A stretch of 64,000 nucleotides of DNA, taken from assembly GCA_002104945.1 (NCBI GenBank), contig MCFH01000047.1, positions 310,001 to 374,000 on the forward strand, written 5' to 3'. This document shows, one piece after another, positions 31,453 to 44,916 of this stretch. This stretch comes from Piromyces finnis finn (taxonomy: Eukaryota > Fungi > Neocallimastigomycota). Below the pieces are notes generated by a model that saw nothing but the letters and a program-made list of their open reading frames with translations, was not told the origin of the DNA and did no database searches. Each line of letters opens with the position of its first letter. Within the stretch, counting starts at the first letter, position 1. The translations under genes and the position numbers were made by a program.

Positions 31453-34420
31453 TCAGTCTTTAGAAAATGTGTCATGTTCATTGATATAGTCTTCAGATGA
31501 TTGAATTTTTGATGAAAATGTGCAATAAAATTTACTCTTGTTTTTATTTTGATTTTTATTCGTTGTTTGTGCTTGTTGTTGTTGTTGCATTGGTAATTTA
31601 AAATTTTGTTTTTGAAACAAAAAGAATAATATTCGACAACCATATAAAAAGATATAGTTAGAAACGGAAATTAACGTATAAATGATTTGTTGTAGAATAC
31701 TATTTAATATGTAATTATTGATATGTAGATTTTGTATTATTAAGAGTAGAATAACACTTAGTACGTTAACGTATAGGGATGGAGAAATACATCGGTAATC
31801 ATTGAATAGGGTATGAACATTCCATACTAAAAAAATTAATACTGACATTAATATGATAATGGAGGTTTTAAAGGCTACTGAAATAATCAAAATTAAAATT
31901 CCTATGGTATGCTTAATGGTACATATTTCAAAATTATTTCCAGATTCAATCACTCTGACAGTCACTTCAAAAGGATAATGTATAAAAAGTAAACTATTTA
32001 AGAATAGATCGAAAATAATAAAAGATAAAATGAAAAGGTATTTATGATGCCTAATATTTTTTGTTTCCTCTTGTTTCAACGGAATAGTATTAATTAATTT
32101 ATATAAAATAGGAATGAAATTAAAGGTAAATCCAATGGATAGGAAAAAAACTTCTAGATGACATTTCATAAAAGTTAATTTTCCTAATTTTGTATAGCCA
32201 CTACTAAGTATGAGGATAGATCCCATGATGCAAACAATCCATAGCCCTTTTGGTAAAAATTCAAAAAATGGGTTTAATTTTTCATGGAATAAAAATAGAA
32301 TGGATAAAAGATAAAAAATGATAATGATGCTCATTATAATCATACTTATCCATCCAATCCATGATTCATTTTTATCATACGATAGGTAATAAACTTTTGT
32401 AATATCCTCAACTGCTTGAAGTGCTTCCTCCGCCGATGTATTTCCATATAAAAATTCATATATATGTTTTCTATATTTCTCGGAATAATCATCGTAATTT
32501 TCGGTTTTTGTATTGGGTCTTCCAATAAATTGTAATGATTTGTAGAGAGAACAATTAGCTATTTTACATACTTCCTCTTCATCATACAAAGAAGGAATTC
32601 CGGAAAAGATTAAATTATCTAATATAAATCTTCTTTGCATTTCTTTTGATGTCATAAATTTAAAGGTTGTCACGGCAGCTTTTTTTCTTTCTTTCTCCAT
32701 ATCATTTAAGATTCCTAAATTATAACCGGTTAAGGAAGCTCCTGAAATCCCTTCTTTGACCCCTGGTAAAAGACTTGTTTTGTAAGGAATTAAATAAATT
32801 TGAGGTGCTAAAAATATCCAAAATTTTATGAATAAGGATTCTTCTGAAAATAATTTTGCCGAAGTGATATAATCCCCTGAAAGAAAAAACTCATCTTTTT
32901 TTTTTTTTTTTAATGTAATTTGTTGTATTATTATTTAAAGAAAAATAAGAAATAATATTAATATTATACTACAACAACAACAATAACAACAACAACAACA
33001 ATAATAATAATAATAATAATAATAATAATAATAATAATAATAATAATAATAATAATAATAATAATAATAATAATAATAATAATAATAATAATAATAATAA
33101 TAATAATAATAATAATAATAATAATAATAATAATAATAATAATAATAATAATAATAATAATAATAATAATAATAATAATAATAATAATAATAATACATAT
33201 ATTATTATTATAGTTACCTGATGAAATTTCTTCTTTAATTTTTTTCATCATTTTTAAAGCATTTATAGCGGTTTCACTACTTAATTCTGGATATGGATCA
33301 TTTAAAGATTCTCTATAAGAATAAATGAGTTCATAAATTGAACATGATCCATGCTCACTATCTAATTCAAATTCCATAATAATATTAGTTAATATTTTCA
33401 AATATTTAATTAATATGAATGAATATATACTATTATTTTAGATAAACTGTTTTTAAAAAAGAAAGGTTTTAATATTTATTATTATTATTTTTTTTAAAAA
33501 GTAATATAATAAATTCTTACTATCAAATAATCCATTATAAGCTAAAAAATCGGTATTATTAGCTTCTCTTTCTTTTTTTAAAATATATTTTCCTGTTTCC
33601 AATAGTTCACTCCATGTTTTTGGAATTCTTTTATTATATTTATTTAATATTTTCTCATTTGAATATAGTACTGTAAATCCTATTTTAATTGGCTATTAAT
33701 AATATTTTTATTATTCATAGGTATATATAAATAATATATATTAATATATATAAATATAATGTTTATAATTTTTTTTTTTTTTAGTATTATTTTATTATTT
33801 ATTTATTTTCAAGTATTTCCTACCAATCCAACCAATTTATCTTGGTAAATACACGATTCAGAAACAATTTTTTGATTATACATGTTAATATGACTGATAG
33901 ATAATTCATTTTTCAAATCCATTAAATACTTTCCATATTTTGGTAGATAGACATTATCGTAAAAATATAAATCATACTTTCTTGCTGAATTTTTTTTATT
34001 AAGTATTGCTTCAATGTATGATCCATAATCTGTTACAGAATAAGTCATATTATTTCGGGTGAGGAGGTTTAATTTAACAGTAATATTTAAATGATGAGTA
34101 TTTGAATACGCATTAAATTCATTCACCATCGGTGTATATATTTGTTCATTTTCATCTCTAGAAAAGGCAATAGCATTTAATACGATCTTTGCATATCCTA
34201 AAACTAAATTTGAAAATAATATATTACCATATTACCATTTAAAATTATTTATTATTTATTTTTATTAATTATTTATTATGTTTATTAATTATAGTTATAC
34301 TATAATTTTTTATTATTATATTTAATAATAATAAAAAAAAAGGTGTAATTCATTCTTACATTTATTAACATATAGGAATAATAAAATATATATTATTATA
34401 AATTTTTTTATTGGTAGCAT
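31453..34420 (-). CDS. SBP-GPCR paralog A: signal peptide + PBP type II (sugar solute-binding) domain + 7TM; exons 34420-34360, 34203-33824, 33692-33521, 33361-33218, 32894-31453; 732 aa
   Basis: Spliced N-terminus MLPIKKFIIIYILLFLYVNKFLGYAKIVLNAIAF. SBP motifs YDLYFYD, KLVGLP..LYSN, PKTWSEL, PGVKEGISGASLTGYNLGI and FMTSKEMQ. Seven hydrophobic segments with Cys at the top of TM3 (KCHL) and in ECL2 (EIC). Confidence 0.88.
32971..33195. repeat. (ACA)~10(ATA)~65 microsatellite inside intron 4 of SBP-GPCR A
   Basis: Directly visible. It lies between the donor at 33217 and the acceptor at 32895. Confidence 0.95.
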
Positions 34421-42034: not shown

Positions 42035-44916
42035 TTACGGTGACAAAAGTTTATTATTATTATTACTAAAAGTATTTGATTCATTATTATTATGATTTAC
42101 ATTAGTATTAGTATTATATATTATGTATTCTGAGTATTTATATGAGATAGATGAATCTGTTGCAAAATGATAATCTATGATTTTTGATATTATTGATGTT
42201 CTAAAATTTCTTTTATATTCAAAATTTGGAAAGTTGATGTTTTCGGTAGTGTTCGTATCGGTAGCTGTATTTATTCCGACTTTATTTGTTTCATTTTCGG
42301 TTTTACTACAACTCACAGATTTAGTGAAATTTGTTTCACTTTCTATGAATCCTTGGTTAATTTTATTAACAAATTCAGCTTTTGTATTTCGTTTTTTGAA
42401 GTAGCCAATGATAACTCTAAATCCATATAAAAATACATAATTTGATACTGCCATCATTATTATTATGCATTCATTTATTATAAAACTGGATATATAACTA
42501 TTCATTTTTACATAATTAAATATAAAAATTAAAATAATTGAGAGTGTATCTATATATATTGCTGAAACAATGAATTTTAGATCATTAAAAGTAGTTGAGA
42601 TATTCCATTCAATAAAAACTAAAATTAATAATGAAATGGCAATAGCAATTTTATATGCCACGATTAGTGAAACAAATAGTTTTCCTAAAAGACTATTTAT
42701 TTTACAAATATTATAATTTTCTCCCTCATTAATACTATTAATATTATTACTTTCGACTGAATATGAATTTATAAATAATAGACCATCAATCAGCATTTCA
42801 AAAATAATAAATATTAGTGAAAACAAATATCCATGCTTATATGTCCAGGTAGATATTAAATTTTCTTCTGGGAAATTAACAATTAATCTGTATAAAACTG
42901 GTATAAAATTTAATAGTACACCCACAGATATTAAAATAGTATGAAGTTGACATTTAATCACCGTTATATCTGATAAACTCATAAAGAAAGAGCATAGAAT
43001 AAGAATGGCACCAATGATATTTATAATCCAAAAATCAAAAGTTAAAAATTCAAAGAACGGACTATAATTTTCTAAAAAAAGGAATATCATGGATAAAAAC
43101 ATGGCTACTGATATAACGATAATACTAATTGAAAAAATAAAGCCCGTTAATGATTCCTTTGGATGAATTGAAATTTTATGTATTCGTGTTATATCATCAA
43201 TTTTTTTTAAAACTTCCTCAACTGTTTTATTTCCGTACAAATAATTATAGATATAATCTCGAAATTTTTGAGAATAGGATAAATAATTATCTGTTTTTGA
43301 TCCTGGTCGATTTATTGGTTGAAGATTTTTAAACAATTCACAATCCACTTCGGAACAAACTTCAGTATCATTGTACAACGAATAAATAGCGGTATTAATT
43401 AAAAAATTTTTTAAATATTTCTTTTGAACTTCAAGGGATGTAATATATTTAATTGCTTCAATTGCTGCCATTTTATTTTCGATTTTTATGTCATTCCCAA
43501 TTCCTATATTAAATGAACACATAGTTGAACCAGAAATACCTTTTTCTCTTCCTGGAAAATTCGCCATTTTATATGGCATAGTAGATGATAATACCGACCA
43601 AATCCAAAAGTTTAAAAATAATCCACTTCCATCGGATAATGTAGCCGCTGTTTGATCATAATTCGACATAAATTTTTCATCTATTTTTTTTTTTTTTTTT
43701 TTTTTAATCAATTAATATTAAAAATTAAAAAGGAAGCTTTTATTATTATAATCAATATTATTCTTTATTCCTATTATTATTAACCTGTTGATATGGTATT
43801 TTTTATTTTTTTTAACATTTTTAAGGCCTCTACAACTTCTGGACTTGTTATTTCAGGAAATGGTGAATTAGGGCTCTTTCTAAATGAATATATATATTGG
43901 TATAATGAACACATGCCTTCTTCACTATCTAGATTTCAAAAAAAAAAAAAAAGAAACAAAACAAAAAGTATTAAATATAATTTTATTTAATTAGCAAGAT
44001 AAAATGAATAAACCTTCATTTATTAATACTAAAAAAAAAAAAATAAAATCTTGTAATGGAAACATATTAATCTTTTACATTTATATTTATTATATAATAA
44101 TAAATTCTAATTTACCATCAAAAAATCCATTATATGGTATAAAATTCAAATTATTTAATTTATATTCTTCATCCATAATATATTTACTTGTTGCTAAAAA
44201 TTCATCCCAAGTTTCCGGTACAGTTTTATTGTATTTATTCAAAAGGTTTTCATTATAATATAACACTTTATAACCTAAAGTCACTGGCTTTTTTTTTAAA
44301 AAAAAAAATATATAATACATGTTTATATGTAATATATTAAAAATTTTTATAAAAAAAAATATATATATAAAATAAAATTACTTTTCCATTAAACCTATTA
44401 CCAGTGAAACAATTTTATCTTTATATATACAATTTTCCATTATAAAATCGGAATCATACATATTGATATGATTTTTTGGTAATGTACTATTTAAATCATA
44501 TAGATATGGACCATATCTTTCTGTATATAAACCGTCATATATATATATATCATATTTATTCGTTTTCTTTTTTAGTAATGATTCTAGGGTTGATTCAAAA
44601 TCCGTTATACTTGTTGAATTTTCCATTGTAAATAAATTAAAATTAATTTTAATATCAAGATTATTTTTTATGGCATAGTTATTAAAGTCATTAATAAGGA
44701 GGGTAAAAGCTTGATTTTCTCCATCCATATAATTTGCTATAGCATTTAATGTTAAACATCTTGATACTATATAATTAATAAAATAATATAATATTAATTA
44801 ATTAATGATTATATTAAAGTGAAAGTTTTAATTAATAAAGAAAAAAAAAAAAAAAAAGGAAATTTACTTTTGATTATACAAAATATGAATATGAATTTTA
44901 ATAAAATCAATATCAT
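42035..44916 (-). CDS. SBP-GPCR paralog D; exons 44916-44868, 44766-44402, 44287-44116, 43928-43785, 43680-42035; 791 aa
   Basis: Signal MILILLKFIFIFCIIKISRC, motifs YDIYIYD, IVSLP, PETWDEF and PGREKGISGSTMCSFNIGI, and 7 TM segments. Confidence 0.88.

Follow-up and report, generated by a model that had tools for sequence, protein, structure and literature searches.

What is encoded by four similar genes that lie head to tail in the genome of the anaerobic gut fungus Piromyces finnis, and what might their products sense? The array is on the minus strand of a 64,000-nucleotide stretch of contig MCFH01000047.1 (positions 310,001 to 374,000; "the window", to which coordinates refer unless another contig is named). 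Among natural degraders of raw plant biomass the anaerobic gut fungi rank with the best; we know of no established mechanism by which they sense their substrates. We found that the array, from the end of the gene D stop codon at 31453 to the gene A ATG at 44916, consists of four intact, co-oriented five-exon genes (A-D), and that each almost certainly encodes a signal peptide, a type II solute-binding protein (SBP) domain and the seven-transmembrane (7TM) domain of a class C G-protein-coupled receptor (GPCR), an architecture predicted from both sequence comparison and structure models. We favour, as reasonably probable, the reading that A-D are four old paralogues of an SBP (type II)-class C GPCR family of the Neocallimastigomycota and act as receptors for plant sugars. 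This estimate is for the mechanism as a whole; the integrity and structure of the genes, their domain identities, the size of the family, its arrays and the age of the duplications are matters of observation.

Within the window, tblastn with full-length homologues matched four co-linear minus-strand exon sets (31.6-44.8 kb) and no other segment. For each gene all frame-compatible GT..AG introns were listed, the choice among them was made by homology, and the frames were checked, gene B being read base by base. The assembly comprises 56.46 Mb in 232 contigs, and the genome has 18% GC (11-36% within the window). The resulting models are as follows.

42035..44916, minus strand: gene A, SBP (type II)-class C GPCR, five exons, 791 aa
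44916-44868, 44766-44402, 44287-44116, 43928-43785, 43680-42035, minus strand: exons of gene A (splice and frame check)
42341..43168, minus strand: 7TM domain of gene A, aa 415-690 (AlphaFold2 model and Foldseek)
38887..41550, minus strand: gene B, same architecture as A, five exons, 775 aa
41550-41496, 41432-41068, 40964-40793, 40719-40576, 40478-38887, minus strand: exons of gene B (splice and frame check)
39130..39957, minus strand: 7TM domain of gene B, 51-52% identical to that of A (7tm_3, hydropathy, alignment)
35170..37914, minus strand: gene C, same architecture as A, five exons, 763 aa
37914-37866, 37780-37410, 37307-37136, 37007-36864, 36725-35170, minus strand: exons of gene C (splice and frame check)
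35392..36204, minus strand: 7TM domain of gene C (7tm_3, hydropathy, alignment)
31453..34420, minus strand: gene D, same architecture as A with a short C-terminal tail, five exons, 732 aa
34420-34360, 34203-33824, 33692-33521, 33361-33218, 32894-31453, minus strand: exons of gene D (splice and frame check)
31561..32373, minus strand: 7TM domain of gene D (7tm_3, hydropathy, alignment)

The four models contain no internal stops, every intron is GT..AG with phases 1,0,1,1, each gene has an exon 3 of 172 nt and an exon 4 of 144 nt, and the spacers between the genes are 484, 972 and 749 bp. An earlier reading of the window made from the sequence alone (the sequence-only reading) had proposed four intact co-oriented genes with these phases and invariant exons, and the splice and frame checks agree with it; the SBP motifs it had listed are also present, in slightly degenerate form (YDIYIYD/YELYFYD, PETWDE/PKTWDQ, SFNIGI/GYNLGI). 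Database proteins corroborate two of the models: the gene C model agrees with the GenBank P. finnis protein P0040 at every one of its 763 residues, and the gene A model agrees without a difference with P0001 over aa 1-701, both database entries being annotated as "periplasmic binding protein-like II [Piromyces finnis]". With P0001 as tblastn query, gene B was recovered at a linked E-value of 2.9e-175 and gene D at 5e-24, 3e-26 and 6e-97. Two acceptors of gene B were ambiguous (41432 or 41423; 40478 or 40514) and were picked by homology.

P0001 skips 44 residues of the gene A C-terminal tail, corresponding to an in-frame, stop-free segment of 132 nt (window 42176-42307, GTAAAA..TAG) that encodes S-I-I-S-K-I-I before Y-H. 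Because this motif is kept in B, C and the family consensus, we prefer the unspliced reading, in which the segment would be a mis-called or alternative intron. More generally, a cytoplasmic tail motif S-x-I-x-K/R-I-I-x-Y-H can be recognized in A, B and C (at about 42170-42200, 38960-38990 and 35240-35270, respectively); the consensus sequences of 35 and 38 family members also show it, as K...YH, and it is absent from the shorter tail of gene D. Intron 4 of gene D, at 323 nt the longest of the 16 introns, contains a ~250-nt trinucleotide microsatellite (32950-33198) that reads as long poly-Tyr/poly-Ile open reading frames (ORFs) on the minus strand.

Searches against Pfam, the PDB and fold libraries used P0001 (gene A), P0040 (gene C) and single exons from the window, B and D being compared locally; on the joined coding sequences we checked frames, analysed hydropathy, aligned the four products locally and compared them locally with homologous proteins and loci. 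P0001 matched SBP_bac_8 (PF13416) over residues 65-335 (50.7 bits, cut-off 27; 2.8e-13) and SBP_bac_1 (PF01547) with 25.9 bits against a cut-off of 26, with 7tm_3 in the same protein, so that the gene A product gives the SBP_bac_1/8 and 7tm_3 matches that HMMER had been expected to find. P0040 has precomputed matches to PF13416, PF01547 and PF00003, and the SBP membership of B and D follows from their 43-53% identity to A and C over ~393 positions. When single SBP exons were compared with Pfam only one weak match was obtained (SBP_bac_1, 3.7e-4, exon 3 of gene A), those of B and D being non-significant, and a six-frame search of the genome with PF13416 did not flag the array; the SBP domain is thus visible only on the spliced products. 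No match to ANF_receptor (PF01094), the type I flytrap, was found on P0001, whose ectodomain belongs to SBP_bac_8/SBP_bac_1 (clan PBP, type II).

Structure modelling led to the same assignment. The AlphaFold2 model of P0001 had a mean predicted local distance difference test score (pLDDT) of 84.3 and a predicted TM-score (pTM) of 0.74, and a Foldseek search with its ectodomain (~390 aa) returned 1eu8, 6j9w, 6dtq and others at an E-value of 1e-19, with target TM-scores of 0.78-0.80 over ~400 columns; sequence, model and fold search therefore bear out the type II sugar-SBP fold that had been suggested. The nearest solved sequences were Thermotoga maritima MalE3, Thermococcus litoralis TMBP, the Thermus thermophilus alpha-glycoside-binding protein and SmoF (a binder of sulfoquinovosyl glycerol), and a 35-sequence family profile lifted the matches to solved sugar binders to an E-value of 7.5e-26. 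The top 50 fold matches of the ectodomain were carbohydrate or glycoside binders with the single exception of 4xaj, whose match is most likely due to a fused maltose-binding-protein tag. There are no ABC transporter genes among the large ORFs of the window, and the SBP is covalently fused to the 7TM domain.

The second half of each protein is a class C receptor domain. Pfam 7tm_3 (PF00003) was found in the last exon of all four genes (E-values from 3.5e-10 to 5.2e-8), the matches for D (3.5e-10, 40.4 bits), B (1.3e-8, 35.3 bits) and C (1.5e-8, 35.1 bits) exceeding the gathering cut-off of 33.5 bits, and coverage running from positions 5-8 to 220-244 of the 251 in the model. Hydropathy gave a signal-peptide-like N-terminus and seven transmembrane segments (TM1 to TM7) per gene, TM7 of B being called through homology. 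Cysteines stand at the top of TM3 and in the second extracellular loop (ECL2) of each protein (A C487/C569, B C491(492)/C575, C C491/C570, D C497/C577), and each of the two positions is Cys in 80 of 81 aligned family sequences; the TM3-ECL2 disulfide itself we infer. An AlphaFold2 model of the gene A 7TM domain, made with a 38-sequence alignment, showed seven long helices and an ECL2 hairpin (pLDDT 91.3, pTM 0.88), and in a Foldseek search with it against the PDB all matches listed to rank 50 were class C receptors (query TM-scores 0.61-0.74), including Drosophila and human GABA-B, GPR156, CaSR and mGlu1/5. The 7TM part of the 35-sequence family profile matched GABA-B2 at 4.7e-4 and mGlu3 at 9e-4. 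A phmmer search of PDB sequences with the gene A 7TM domain alone found no match; the relationship to solved receptors emerged only with the family profile and the fold search. G53, W188, N189 and the cysteine pair are invariant or nearly so among 38 7TM sequences. Hydropathy, Pfam and the AlphaFold2/Foldseek results thus agree on the seven helices, cysteine pair and 7tm_3 similarity that the four proteins had been credited with. In class C receptors a cysteine-rich domain typically lies between flytrap and 7TM, and is missing in GABA-B; we found no match to this domain (NCD3G) on P0001, in whose model the SBP ends near aa 408 and TM1 starts at aa 421, leaving a linker of ~12 residues.

How old is the array, and how unusual? 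The genome as a whole gave 79 matches to 7tm_3 and at least 55 matches to the last exon of gene A (SBP plus 7TM) at E-values below 1e-20, of which 45 were free of stops; 34 of the 55 are grouped into 12 arrays, which have two to five members each and are almost all co-oriented, and the four-gene array is therefore typical of this genome, not unique. Among A-D pairwise identity is 43-53% in the SBP (53% between A and B) and 35-51% in the 7TM domain, the SBP being the better conserved half. In a maximum-likelihood tree of 81 last-exon sequences (a quick search, with support from the Shimodaira-Hasegawa-like approximate likelihood ratio test only), A and B fell in a clade of five (support 99), their respective nearest relatives being a Piromyces sp. 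E2 protein and metagenome sequences; C paired with a Neocallimastix protein (support 91), and D lay deep in a clade of 30 (support 97) with the P. finnis arrays C113, C199 and C167 and sequences from other genera. Since A-D are dispersed in this way among other arrays and genera, they are not the product of a recent local burst. The sequence-only reading had them "diversified by tandem duplication": the copies are indeed in tandem, but the duplications are old and A-D do not form a clade of their own.

Synteny points the same way. Piromyces sp. E2 has a syntenic co-oriented array (KZ150754.1:397136-418243) whose members in order best match A, B, an extra member and C; in the extra member exons 4 and 5 are fused, intron 4 having been lost, and this locus contains several N gaps and GenBank models that are fragments. 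The Neocallimastix sister of C has no family neighbour within +/-10 kb, and its introns are at the same three positions, which recur in other P. finnis arrays as well. Because these positions are common to genera, the fused, intron-bearing gene predates the split of these genera, and the sequences of the Piromyces sp. E2 and Neocallimastix orthologues or sisters point to purifying conservation across them. All significant homologues were from Piromyces, Anaeromyces, Neocallimastix or Orpinomyces, or from metagenome contigs. One of the latter, JGI 3300010976 Ga0138317_1010104, has an uninterrupted SBP-7TM ORF of 717 aa; because a leucine-rich-repeat ORF follows it 116 nt downstream, it may be genomic or chimeric, and we dropped it as evidence of spliced mRNA. 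It could be an intronless member from some gut fungus or a chimeric transcript assembly. Elsewhere in P. finnis, the arrays C160:556302-568216 and C101:690689-711967 are near-identical copy for copy (branch lengths 0.002-0.09), which points to a segmental duplication of very recent date or to haplotigs that were not collapsed.

The ectodomain is of bacterial type. When one genome per bacterial species was scanned by a pattern-seeded search, the SBP relatives that came up were only 22-35% identical and belonged to many phyla (Geobacteraceae, Pseudobdellovibrionaceae, Lachnospiraceae, Paenibacillus and others), and in protein-language-model and structure look-ups clusters of bacterial trehalose/maltose-type SBPs adjoined the fungal cluster. 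In an SBP-only profile search the family itself dominated, the top 150 matches all having E-values below 1e-72 and 445 representatives reaching 1e-30 or less. The proposal that the module was grafted from bacteria thus stands insofar as the nearest non-fungal relatives are bacterial, but at 22-35% identity no donor can be named, and acquisition from rumen bacteria is no more than a possibility. The same pair of domains occurs in Allomyces, so the fusion may have an older origin; no Allomyces SBP_bac_1 GPCRs surfaced in our word-indexed protein searches.

In the mechanism we propose, a two-lobed clamp of the CUT1 type on the secreted face would be joined by the ~12-residue linker to the class C seven-helix domain. 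The ligand, a soluble carbohydrate or glycoside released as plant cell walls are broken down, would bind between the lobes and close the clamp; closure would be passed to a probably dimeric 7TM domain and activate a heterotrimeric G protein, and the downstream signal might adjust zoospore behaviour or the expression of enzymes and transporters. The genome has about eight G-alpha loci. Here the ligand class, dimerisation, G-protein coupling and physiological output are what we infer, and several points weigh against the proposal. Expression and splicing of A-D are predicted from sequence-based models. The 7tm_3 match of gene A scored 33.3 bits on its ORF, below the cut-off of 33.5 (35.8 bits in a six-frame genome search), and a literature search found no ligand, dimer, coupling or chemotaxis study of any member. 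Identity to the nearest solved sugar binders is only 17-21%, and A-D all have Gly at the position of D118, where the alpha-glycoside-binding protein, MalE3 and TMBP have Asp.

The last point comes from mapping the pocket through HMMER alignments to 6jai, 6jaz and 6jar, entries whose titles name mutated R49, D118, W287 and R356 of the Thermus alpha-glycoside-binding protein; three of these positions could be placed by sequence, in alignments of 17-21% identity, R49 falling outside the aligned part. D118 lies in a P-x-x-x-D-A-G stretch of the solved binders, and its replacement by Gly in all four genes sets their pocket apart from those of the nearest solved binders, a lead, and only that, to the array's ligand being bound not quite as in those disaccharide binders. 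The W287 position is F, F, Y and Y in A-D, respectively, and the R356 position Arg in all four. Across the family these positions vary (D, G, S, N or E at D118 among 35 members; Y/F/S/N and others at W287 and R/K/E/D/N and others at R356 among 81 sequences), and among the 81 the pattern is uniform inside arrays and differs from array to array. Differences in ligand class, if there are any, therefore seem to lie between arrays and not inside that of A-D, which as a lead only may form one specificity group, not a panel for four ligands. The sequence-only reading had pictured a receptor panel for different oligosaccharides; this is weakened by pocket positions that are of the same class in A-D (Gly; Phe/Tyr; Arg) and differ between arrays, and further by the SBP being better conserved among A-D than the 7TM domain.

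The pocket also bears on whether plant sugars are the ligand at all. We consider it rather unlikely that A-D are real receptors for something else, such as a sulfo- or phospho-glycoside, a glycerol ester or a metabolite of a rumen partner. The SBP_bac_1/8 families (Pfam clan PBP) do include non-sugar binders, SmoF with its sulfoquinovosyl glycerol is among the best matches in both sequence and fold, the sugar-contacting Asp of the nearest disaccharide binders has become Gly, and a methanogen partner induces family members in a related fungus; however, all of the top 50 fold matches but 4xaj bind carbohydrate or glycoside, and the aligned W287 and R356 positions retain the aromatic platform and the Arg that sugar sites typically have. 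Quite improbable, in our view, is a role of the 7TM domain mainly as a membrane anchor, the protein capturing or presenting sugar at the surface, as a tethered SBP that supplies a transporter or concentrates sugar locally, without G-protein signalling. A complete class C bundle is predicted (pLDDT 91) and its constrained residues (the cysteine pair, G53, W188 and N189 in 38 sequences) would be unneeded in a mere anchor, and G-alpha genes exist; in favour of the anchor, the literature search found no coupling study, and Seppälä et al. 2016 raised the idea for gut-fungal SBP homologs with one or few transmembrane helices.

The arrangement of the genes suggests a further alternative. Class C receptors act as dimers, some of them as obligate heteromers (GABA-B1/B2, in which GABA-B2 is a non-binding subunit, and T1R2/T1R3), and neighbouring paralogues could likewise be obligate subunits of combinatorial receptors. 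The presence of 34 of 55 genes in 12 co-oriented arrays, the retention of the array in Piromyces sp. E2 and the lack in gene D of the tail motif of A-C would fit this idea, which we judge about as improbable as the anchor: the Neocallimastix sister of C is solitary within +/-10 kb, and the pocket positions look equally ligand-competent in all four genes, unlike GABA-B2. That some or all of A-D are unexpressed relics is hardly credible. While database gene models were found for A and C only and several other genomic copies carry stops, A-D have complete frames of 2.2-2.4 kb with canonical splice sites although stops readily arise in a genome of 18% GC, and 35-53% identity and conserved motifs persist after old duplications. 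Returning to the plant-sugar receptors that we favour, it is conceivable, though we would not count on it, that the arrays are chemoreceptors for the attraction of zoospores to plant sugars, with one specificity group per array and neighbours that might pair as heteromers. If true, this would make them a natural modular sensor set of bacterial SBPs on GPCRs; the activation geometry of a type II flytrap is, to our knowledge, not seen in any solved class C receptor. The SBP-GPCRs are candidate substrate sensors and a natural template for engineered biosensors, an idea in print since 2016, and the pocket differences between arrays provide a first hint that helps to choose members for ligand screens.

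Other features of the window include, 11 kb from the array, an ORF (19185-20252, plus strand) with a Pectinesterase domain (2.1e-44) and a C-terminal fungal CBM_1 cellulose-binding module, and two divergent paralogous Abhydrolase_3/Say1-like esterase ORFs of 311 and 315 aa (55482-56417, minus strand, and 58038-58985, plus strand, respectively). There is also an ORF for the RNA polymerase largest subunit with Rpb1 domains 1-5 (3240-7715, minus strand), and two plus-strand ORFs have no Pfam match: a Glu/Lys-rich, coiled-coil-like one of 1136 aa (24999-28409) and one of 521 aa (51622-53187).

The family and its architecture are already known, as the sequence-only reading had acknowledged, and A and C are already annotated in GenBank. 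In three gut fungi, one of them P. finnis, Seppälä et al. 2016 (Microb Cell Fact 15:212, PMC5168858) described ~100 class C GPCRs; transcripts of the family were present in P. finnis, and the paper makes no mention of tandem arrays. Krishnan et al. 2012 (PLoS One 7:e29817) had found SBP_bac_1 on eight class C receptors of Allomyces, and Brown et al. 2021 reported such genes to be induced in Caecomyces co-cultures on Avicel and xylan and called their function unknown. New here are the exact gene models, the family and array counts, the age and synteny of the array, and the pocket signature.

Compared with known systems, A-D are closest to the gut-fungal SBP-class C GPCRs of Seppälä et al. 2016, which are of the same family, species and architecture and from which nothing differs in kind; the family is however larger than transcriptome counts suggested, 32 class C GPCRs having been counted for Piromyces from transcriptomes versus at least 55 genomic matches to the SBP-type last exon here, mostly in co-oriented arrays. 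The Glutamate-family GPCRs of Allomyces macrogynus have the same pair of PF01547 and PF00003 in a zoosporic fungus, by common descent with the gut-fungal fusion or by an independent one. GABA-B and GPR156 share the short linker between ectodomain and TM1 without NCD3G, the TM3-ECL2 cysteines and the ECL2 hairpin, and are among the top fold matches of the 7TM domain; in GABA-B, however, the ectodomain is type I (ANF_receptor), whereas here it is a type II SBP, and identity is 11-18%. Finally, the CUT1 SBPs of bacterial and archaeal ABC importers (TMBP 1eu8, 6j9w, MalE3 6dtq and Agrobacterium tumefaciens SmoF 7nbz) have the fold in common with the fungal domain over ~400 residues, together with the P-x-T-W-x-E region and, as aligned at 17-21% identity, probably an aromatic at the W287 position and Arg at the R356 position, but the fungal domain differs from them in being fused to a GPCR, encoded by an intron-bearing gene, without an ABC permease partner, and, in the same alignment, with Gly at the D118 position.

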